Assembly (NCBI GenBank): GCA_907165135.1
Contig: OU015566.1
Coordinates: forward strand, 3,844,001 to 3,908,000
DNA length: 64,000 nt
Reading direction: 5' to 3'
From: Oikopleura dioica
Lineage: Eukaryota > Animalia > Chordata
Shown here: in pieces, positions 39,228-41,559 of the stretch
Position numbering within the stretch: position 1 is the first letter of the stretch
Layout of the letters: each line of letters starts with the position of its first letter
Translations under genes and position numbers: made by a program
Notes under the pieces: model-generated
What the model saw: the letters and a program-made list of their open reading frames with translations, nothing else
The model's database searches: none
What the model was told of the DNA's origin: nothing

Positions 39228-40136
39228 GTTTGAGGGTTTTTTCTTTGGAGTTTTTTCTGAGAAGTTTGATGGCAAAGCTTGGCGAAAAAGTTTAAGTACG
39301 ATTTTGTTACGCTGGAATTATGTAACATTGCCAAGGTGTAAGAAATGATAAATGTCGTCGGTGGAAACAGGGAGGAAATCCAGGGCGAGAGGGCTTCAAC
39401 AGCTTCTCAAAGAAAAGTTGAGAATTTAAAAGGGCATCTGTGAACTCGGAATAAAGACAATCATCGATGATTTGGTGGGATTGAAAAACCCACATCGGAA
39501 TACAACTGTACTCATTTGACACTAATGACTTGATTCTCTCGACAAGAAAGTTATTCATTTTGACAAGTGTTCGGGGTCCTAAAGAGCTTGCATGTTTTCT
39601 TGCCTGTTTTAAAAGAAAACGTGTACTTTGGAACGGCTCATTGCTGGACATGGAATAAATTAATGCCCAATTATCCCAAATTTGAGTGTGCATTGAGTGA
39701 CAGTTTTTGAAGAAGCTACAGTGATTTGAAATGGAATATCTGGCAGCATACAGATTTCAGTACCTTAGGTAGATAATTTGGCTGTGAAAACTTAAGGGTA
39801 TCCCTAAGCTAATTCATTTTTGCTCTATAACTCCATATAAGCTACATCAAAATCGGAAAATTTGTTTTCGACTCAATGAGAATTAAGCAGGGACTTCTGT
39901 TGAAAGAACTTTATCGCCATAAGGTCAATAACATTGCCATTTTGCACGAAAAAGTTTTTCCCCGTCAACTTACAACTGTAGCTTGCCCCTTACGCTCGCG
40001 CGCCGCCTTCTTCCCCAGTCAATTAATATTCCACACTCATCATCGTTGCATTTTTTATAGCGAAACATATAAAACGGCATGTCACAGCGAGTTGCTCACT
40101 CCAACAGAAAGTTGACGAAAAAAAAAATATAAAAAA

Positions 40137-40399
40137 ATGAAGATTTTTGGAAATTTTCTCGTCGCCGCCGTTATGGCCGGATACTCGATGCCGTTTTTGA
40201 AGAGAGGATATTCCATGCCGCTTTTTAAGCGTGGCTACTCGATGCCAATGATCAAACGAGCCCCCTGACCCGAGACGAGCTCGACCAAGCACTAGAACAA
40301 GAAAAGAGAGGATATTCGATCCCGCTCTTCAAGCGCGGCTACTCCATGCCACTCTTCAAAAGATCGCTTACCGGTAGTCAATTCGACGACGAAGAGTAG
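40137..40399 (+). CDS. Neuropeptide precursor with five GYS(M/I)Pxx heptapeptides (1-nt frameshift in C-run 40261-40265)
   Basis: Signal peptide then GYSMPFL-KR-GYSMPLF-KR-GYSMPMI-KR-spacer-KR-GYSIPLF-KR-GYSMPLF-KR-acidic tail; TATAAAA at 40068, AATAAA at 40476. Confidence 0.88.
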
Positions 40400-40542
40400 G
40401 GAAACGACTTCACGAGCTTTTCAACTTGTATTTGTGACAAAATGACTTTTTATTTGAAAACGAAAAAAAAACTGAAATAAAAATTCAAAAACACTGACAG
40501 CGTTTTTACGCATTTAATTGTCGATCACACCTTTTTTCAGCT

Positions 40543-40722
40543 ATAGAAAAAAATAGAATAGTGACACCCTTATTTTAAGCACTCGCGATTATCAATGAAA
40601 GGGCGAATAAGGGTGTAACCCCGAAAAAAAAAAGATATAAGGGTGACACCCTTATTCGCTCTTATATTGTGAATCGCGATAAAAGTGCATAAAATAAGGG
40701 TGTCACTTTTCTATTTTTTTTT
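40543..40722. mobile_element. Palindromic MITE (GTGACACCCTTATT / AATAAGGGTGTCAC family)
   Basis: Nested inverted repeats; the same motif recurs at about 3240-3420 and 34285-34505. Confidence 0.6.
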
Positions 40723-41559
40723 TCAAGAGGGGCGAAAATTCATTTTGAATGTCAAGGATTTTTTTTCCTGCAGAATTGGATCAGCATACCTAATTTTTTC
40801 ATTTGAAAAGAGCAAAAACAAGTGTAACGAGCCAAAGTGCCAAAAAATATGCAGAAGCGGAACTCTGCTCAGCGACTTCGCAGACATCGTTGACAGTCTT
40901 CTGACACATTTTTATTTGTTCGTTGTAGTTTGACACTTGCGCCTTGTTCATTTCTTAATTATTTATAACTATCGAAAAACATTCACTAAAGCGCGATGCA
41001 CTGAAAACAAGAAGGCGTCGATACTGCAAATACAGTTATTCTATCGGCGCTAATGTCTGGCCACAGGTTACAGAGAATCAACAACTTACGATTGCAAGAA
41101 AGTTTTATCGCTTCAAAAATATTATCACAATAAGTCGATTTATCCATTTTCTCTTTTCTGCAAAACAAATCGTTTTTTTAATAATGCAAGGGGGAGAAAT
41201 TCACAATCAAGTTCTTGAAGAAGCCTCACTTTTTGATTACTTTGTTCGAGATTGAAGCTGTTTTAATCAAGTGGATTCAACTATTCAAAGGGATTTTTAT
41301 TTGGCAAGCTCCTGTTGTTGCTCTTGAGTGGTAAAAATGCAGTTATATTCCGGTCTGCTAGTATGCAATTGAATAATTATTGATTGAAAGAAGGGAGGTG
41401 TCTTATTGAGTGACCCCCTTTTCCAGGGCGCTACAGATTCTACCAAATTTTATTATTATATAAATAAAGAAAAGTTTTCAGATGACAGCTATTTCAGTGA
41501 GCAAAATAAAGTAAGATGTGGTAATGATTCGGAAAAGACTTTGATTTTCTGCGGTATAT

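Follow-up and report, generated by a model that had tools for sequence, protein, structure and literature searches.

The nervous system of the larvacean Oikopleura dioica is very small, and the animal completes its life cycle in 5 days. Almost nothing has been published on larvacean neuropeptides, and a full-text literature search did not find any description of Oikopleura peptide precursors. Among tunicates, the LF peptides of the ascidian Ciona (Ci-LF), reported by Kawada et al. in 2011, are characterized by a C-terminal LF and variable N-termini and are not known to contain a GYSMP motif. According to Shiraishi et al., these peptides possess no motif common to other peptides, and their receptors, the Ci-LF-Rs, lie in a urochordate clade that has presumable O. 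dioica members (PMC6475428). Here, we describe a gene that adds a conserved, lineage-restricted, and probably abundant peptide family to this model chordate. The kind of gene is itself well known, but the peptides form an unnamed appendicularian family. In the Okinawan O. dioica, the intact gene probably encodes an 87-residue secreted prepropeptide with five heptapeptide signals, which a base probably undercalled in a cytosine run has split between two reading frames.

The DNA analyzed (the window) is a 64,000-nucleotide stretch of an O. dioica contig. A first-pass annotation had read positions 40137-40399 as a hidden precursor encoding five GYS(M/I)Pxx heptapeptides, and our own reading of the plus strand agrees. 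As it had also remarked, the open reading frame (ORF) track misses the gene, which is real. The features are as follows.

40022-40075, plus strand: conserved core promoter block, with the TATA box (TATAAAA, 40068-40074) at its 3' end
40137-40178, plus strand: start codon and predicted signal peptide MKIFGNFLVAAVMA, 14 residues, predicted cut after Ala14
40179-40259, plus strand: units 1-3, GYSMPFL-KR, GYSMPLF-KR, and GYSMPMI-KR, in frame 1
40261-40265, plus strand: C5 run, an apparent frameshift, one base fewer than in reads and orthologues
40262-40309, plus strand: acidic spacer (A)PLTRDELDQALEQE and KR, read in frame after the shift
40310-40363, plus strand: units 4 and 5, GYSIPLF-KR and GYSMPLF-KR, in the post-shift frame
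40364-40399, plus strand: acidic tail at the C-terminus, SLTGSQFDDEE, followed by the TAG stop (40397-40399), in the post-shift frame
40476-40481, plus strand: AATAAA polyadenylation signal, 77 nt past the stop

Frame 1 starts at position 40137, which is the first ATG because an in-frame TGA lies 8 codons upstream (40113-40115), and it comprises the signal peptide and three units before ending in Ala-Pro-stop (stop codon 40266-40268). The second frame, open from 40262, continues with PLTRDELDQALEQE-KR, GYSIPLF-KR, GYSMPLF-KR, and the acidic tail, up to the stop at 40397-40399. The two frames are offset by 1 nt and join inside the C5 run, and the ORF restored with an extra C encodes 87 residues. 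The 27-nt units start at 40179, 40206, 40233, 40310, and 40337 (n = 5), with the first copy directly abutting the signal peptide and KR following all five. The leader, which is only 14 residues long and was judged by hand, carries Lys2 followed by a 12-residue hydrophobic core, with a mean Kyte-Doolittle value for residues 3-14 of 1.7-2.8 in the family members that have a called start, and with small residues at positions -3 and -1 (V..A, in some relatives V..G). No paralogue was found in the organism's own genome by a whole-genome DNA search and a protein search, and the gene is single-copy. It is also intronless, since none of the relatives shows an interruption of the ORF. On the opposite strand, an ORF at 40023-40292 overlaps the plus-strand peptide frame, which is itself under strong purifying selection.

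The layout of signal peptide, KR-flanked copies, and acidic spacers, in which the first-pass annotation had recognized a prohormone, recurs in the relatives of the gene. The TATA box and the AATAAA signal that it had placed upstream and downstream were located at 40068-40074 and 40476-40481, respectively. Its conclusion that the peptides are not amidated also stands, as Gly precedes KR in none of the GYSMPxx copies, either in the window or in the relatives.

The two halves of the gene were searched separately, as the open pieces 40229-40396 (56 codons) and 40137-40265. The former retrieved three unnamed proteins of 87-94 residues, all of which show the full predicted layout in one unbroken frame. 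A family profile was searched against 1.84 billion representatives and against a 5.8-billion collection. The resulting family consists of about ten sequence clusters, all with intact frames, whose members come only from ENA, JGI, or Logan marine assemblies; neither collection yielded a named member, or one from NCBI or UniRef. The precursors are very small (87-95 residues), and every member begins with M(K/E)I(F/L) and has a 14-residue hydrophobic leader. P0001 is only apparently an exception, its gene call being seven codons late, and the loci L002-L004 read MKIFGNF upstream of it. Seven further candidates (P0006, P0007, P0009-P0012, and P0014) were set aside as translated simple repeats unrelated to the family, as was P0015, an unrelated 332-residue protein on a bacterial-looking contig that falls into the same 90% cluster as P0008.

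Each copy consists of GYSMP and two hydrophobic residues, flanked by KR, RR, or KK. The endings in the 14 listed sequences are FF (17 copies), LF (11, namely 10 GYSMPLF and 1 GYSIPLF), MV (9), FY (8), MY (3), MF (2), FL (1), and MI (1). Copy 3 is always GYSMPM(V/I) across lineages, and because positional identity is kept in this way, the copies must be old and individually maintained. In distant members, the tail is absent and the last copy runs straight into the stop codon (GYSMPFY-stop, GYSMPMY-stop), which fits an active peptide with a free, non-amidated C-terminus. A variant arrangement is seen in P0022, P0024, and P0008, where the acidic spacer is replaced by another conserved peptide flanked by KR, G(S/D)L(A/P)LEW(L/F), and the first peptide is longer, ending in ..P(N/D)F(G)F(V/F); in other larvaceans, more than one type of peptide may thus come from the precursor. 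Pfam gave only sub-threshold noise (DUF5530, E 0.03; FAST_2, E 0.13), and the GYSMP motif was not found in a full-text search of the literature. The proposal of a novel family, which had been made from the DNA letters alone, is supported, as no named family matched in Pfam, in the full-text literature, or in the profile searches, where the one named hit is the mollusc precursor discussed below.

The pattern of substitutions indicates that it is the peptides that have been conserved. Among the five window copies, the codons for G, Y, S, P, K, and R differ by 39 synonymous and 0 non-synonymous changes in 60 pairwise codon comparisons, and the units are therefore neither a young DNA tandem repeat nor a product of chance. 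The K and R codons are retained throughout and vary only synonymously. Substitution rates between lineages were estimated by the Nei-Gojobori method on a codon alignment in which the break in the window was read as NNN. For the peptide units (45 codons), the comparison of the window with three distant lineages gives a dN/dS of 0.03-0.05 and a dS of 0.9-1.4, the synonymous sites being saturated at this distance. Against L009, the nearest relative, 4 synonymous and 0 non-synonymous changes are counted in the same units. In the spacers and tail, dN is ~0.38 compared to ~0.05 for the peptide units, i.e., about eight-fold higher, and the spacers vary in both length and sequence among orthologues. 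This rate pattern is classic for a precursor that is constrained only in its signal peptide, cleavage sites, and mature peptides, and it agrees with the earlier observation that the repeats differ mainly at synonymous positions owing to selection on the peptide.

Conservation extends to the regulatory elements. The TATA-box promoter sequence CGAAACATATAAAAC is invariant in 6 aligned loci, i.e., the window and five orthologous metagenome loci (alignment A1), and the promoter block from ~40022 is identical in L009 and L010 (alignment A3). The AATAAA signal is kept in L009 and L010 and recurs at the corresponding position of L002-L004 and L006, which covers every lineage whose contigs extend far enough. 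The 3'UTR has diverged among the orthologous loci except for the motif TGTATTTGT within ..CTTGTATTTGTGAC.. (40427-40435), which is kept in all those that reach this position and may be an element of post-transcriptional control.

Two neighboring features were observed further downstream. Positions 40547-40720, between two small genes, form a nearly perfect nested palindrome with 37-nt outer arms that are 95% complementary and 39-nt inner arms that are 85% complementary; it looks like a MITE or a hairpin element, and the similarity of L009 and L010 to the window is lost just upstream of it. Beyond it, a 50-residue ORF on the minus strand (40799-40951) is conserved over its N-terminal half (MNKAQVSNYN..KMC..TV.DVCE) and closes with a hydrophobic stretch at the C-terminus, so that its protein looks tail-anchored. 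This ORF has no Pfam match and no usable atlas match. It is kept in sequence and position in L002, L004, and L006, ~400 nt downstream of the peptide gene and convergent with it, and the other flanks of these loci do not match the window.

The first-pass annotation had called for a check of the gene in RNA, and a transcript is indeed seen. In the marine metatranscriptome X3, a 341-nt contig covers 40131-40467 and includes the extra C, although at a depth of only 3.3 and, as with all such contigs, without information on transcript ends, strand, or level. Depth in that run is zero on both sides (39800-40110 and 40513-40700), an argument against carried-over DNA. Words of the stretch also occur in two other RNA runs, belonging to two studies.

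We infer the processing and the signaling role of the product from the layout and the conservation, with the individual steps following the established regulated secretory (prohormone) pathway. Signal peptidase would cut after Ala14, freeing the Gly N-terminus of copy 1, after which proprotein convertases of the furin/PC type would cut after each KR and an enzyme of the carboxypeptidase E/D type would trim the KR. With no Gly to serve for amidation, the expected products are five heptapeptides with free C-termini, namely GYSMPFL, GYSMPLF (twice), GYSMPMI, and GYSIPLF, plus two acidic spacer peptides. The computed [M+H]+ values are 814.380 for both GYSMPFL and GYSMPLF, 798.353 for GYSMPMI, and 796.424 for GYSIPLF. 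At least six loci in this genome score above the cut-off for the convertase P domain (PF01483, P_proprotein). The pharmacophore would be GYSMP together with two hydrophobic or aromatic residues.

Most likely, the peptides are intercellular signals, either neuropeptides or hormones, that act via a G protein-coupled receptor (GPCR), and a neuronal source is plausible. The nearest precursors by language-model features are those of allatostatin, tachykinin, PBAN, PDH, DH31, galanin, and FLPs, with scores of 0.83-0.87 that lie below the level of evidence and serve only as a lead. The peptides could instead be processed and secreted outside the neuronal and endocrine systems, as a waterborne pheromone, as a gamete signal, or as a product secreted by the gut or the house-building epithelium. 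Such a function would be consistent with a transcript that bulk marine metatranscriptomes contain in sufficient abundance to allow its assembly, and KR-flanked repeats also make up pheromone precursors, a familiar case being the yeast alpha-factor. However, the peptides are short, neutral, and hydrophobic, unlike antimicrobial peptides, and the identity of each copy is kept across lineages as in neuropeptide precursors, copy 3 (GYSMPM(V/I)) being an example. The nearest language-model neighbors, for what weak indication they give, are likewise all neuropeptide precursors. We therefore regard a non-neuronal, non-endocrine function as unlikely, and favor signaling as a neuropeptide or hormone.

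The other question that bears on the product is whether the C5 run is real. The assembly for O. dioica from Okinawa, OKI2018_I69 (64.3 Mbp in 19 scaffolds), was made with Canu from Nanopore reads and polished with Racon and Pilon, and its authors state that homopolymers were hard to resolve (PMC8008620). We compared window positions 39800-40700 with the contigs of four public runs (X1, X2, X3, and X5). In X1, a DNA run of organism A, a single contig has one C more behind position 40260, with full depth (154.5/154.5), and is otherwise identical to the window, with 0 differences over 341 nt. X5, which carries the organism label of X1 and comes from another study, also has the extra C (65.9/65.9) together with a C>A change at 40264; the site reads GCC CCA CTG, so that a synonymous change interrupts the homopolymer and the frame stays intact. 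The RNA run X3 has the extra C as well. In contrast, X2, which was deposited under another organism label in 2025, gives a gap-free contig over 40131-40389 and thus C5, with three substitutions. Two of these (40273 A>C and 40291 A>G) leave the encoded residue unchanged in the downstream frame. The C5 of X2 may reflect a genuine truncating allele, or else a recurrence of the homopolymer error in a second long-read data set.

The orthologues consistently have the longer run. The window is the sole gapped row at the C-run column both in A1, with its five metagenome loci, and in A3, where the nearest relatives L009 and L010 read GCC CCC TTG at the site. In the nearest relative among the proteins, P0004, residues 32-116 read ...MIKRAPLTRDELDQ... 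across the break position. These data bear out two specific predictions made from the window sequence. First, a sixth C had been postulated as missing at 40261, and an extra C is present in the contigs of three of the four runs, with X2 having C5, and in all intact orthologues. Second, read-through across the break had been predicted, and residues 32-116 of P0004 match this prediction exactly.

If C5 were real in this genome, the gene would be either a truncated allele encoding 43 residues (the signal peptide and three heptapeptides) or a young pseudogene. The retention of C5 in an assembly polished with Illumina reads would fit this explanation, as would the gap-free contig of X2, and to the extent that X2 allows for a truncating allele that really segregates, we give it a small probability. 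Against a real C5 stands X1, which has the extra C at full depth in one contig while being elsewhere identical to the window, and the same extra base is found in X5 and X3. The intact downstream frame also argues against decay, in view of the exclusively synonymous differences between the peptide codons of the window and L009. Since the assembly is based on Nanopore reads and the extra C occurs in runs and relatives, C5 is probably a homopolymer error, and a truncated allele or pseudogene is quite improbable. A tiny intron at the C run was rejected because there is no GT..AG, the shift is only 1 nt, and the orthologues are continuous, and programmed frameshifting is unnecessary since the reads carry C6. 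Most likely, then, C5 is an uncorrected Nanopore undercall of C6 and the true product has 87 residues. On this reading, small genes escape annotation because of homopolymer errors left in the Okinawan reference.

We also consider it unlikely that the peptides are true homologues of a known family, be it ascidian Ci-LF or the mollusc MIP-related (PxFV-amide) peptides. The first-pass annotation had suggested a distant kinship to Ci-LF, and three of the five window peptides do end in LF and would be non-amidated like Ci-LF; in addition, the urochordate LF-receptor clade has been reported with presumable O. dioica sequences (PMC6475428). This suggestion is not sustained by the wider family, however, in which the -LF ending is not conserved, with FF, FY, MV, MY, and MF being as common. 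It is the N-terminal GYSMP that is conserved, which Ci-LF peptides are not known to have, and no Ciona protein is found at E <= 0.001 among the profile matches in 1.84 billion representatives. For the MIP-related peptides, the case is made by the sole named profile match, the Patella 'MIP-related peptides' precursor XP_050412190.1 (P0013; E 8e-4), to which hhalign assigns a probability of 90% over 20 columns with the pattern KRG(Y/F)SxPxF. However, the Patella peptides contain one Val more and a Gly for amidation, both missing from the larvacean peptides; a repeated match of 7 residues easily arises by convergence, and the repeats inflate the score. Judging by these sequences, convergence appears as likely as descent to account for the likeness of the mollusc and larvacean motifs.

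Since the LF-receptor clade has presumable O. dioica members, the larvacean peptides are reasonable candidate ligands, but membership of this receptor clade does not show that the larvacean and Ci-LF peptides are homologous. We can envisage, as a long shot, that GYSMP peptides are the ligands of orphan Oikopleura receptors of the LF-R clade and that the 'Ciona-specific' Ci-LF system is one branch of a pan-tunicate system of peptides and receptors. If so, the G(Y/F)SxPxF core common to the mollusc MIP-related peptides could go back to an older family of the Bilateria. In any case, the gene supplies peptides that can be synthesized as ligands for those orphan GPCRs of O. dioica that are akin to the LF receptors of Ciona.

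In its general architecture, the larvacean precursor resembles those of allatostatin-A, tachykinin-related peptides, and FLPs, with a predicted signal peptide, near-identical copies arranged in tandem and bounded by dibasic sites, acidic spacers, and a far higher conservation of the copies than of the spacers. It differs from them in that there is no common motif, no amidation, and no Pfam family, and in being tiny (87-95 residues) with copy 1 placed directly after the signal peptide. The mollusc MIP-related (Mytilus inhibitory peptide/PxFV-amide) precursors are likewise multi-copy and KR-flanked, and have the core G-(Y/F)-S-x-P-x-F in common with the larvacean units. However, the mollusc units have a further Val or Ile and a Gly, giving ...PxFV-amide (the Patella units end in ...FVG-KR), whereas the larvacean peptides end in PxF, PxV, or PxY with a free carboxyl group; moreover, the two phyla are far apart, and the match spans only 20 columns of a short repeated motif. 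The Ci-LF system (Ci-LF-1 to -8, from one precursor) is similar in being tunicate-restricted and in yielding several short, non-amidated, hydrophobic peptides by cleavage at basic sites, and some larvacean copies end in -LF. The two systems differ in which end of the peptide is fixed: the larvacean peptides combine an invariant N-terminal GYSMP with a variable C-terminal hydrophobic pair, whereas Ci-LF is characterized by the reverse arrangement.
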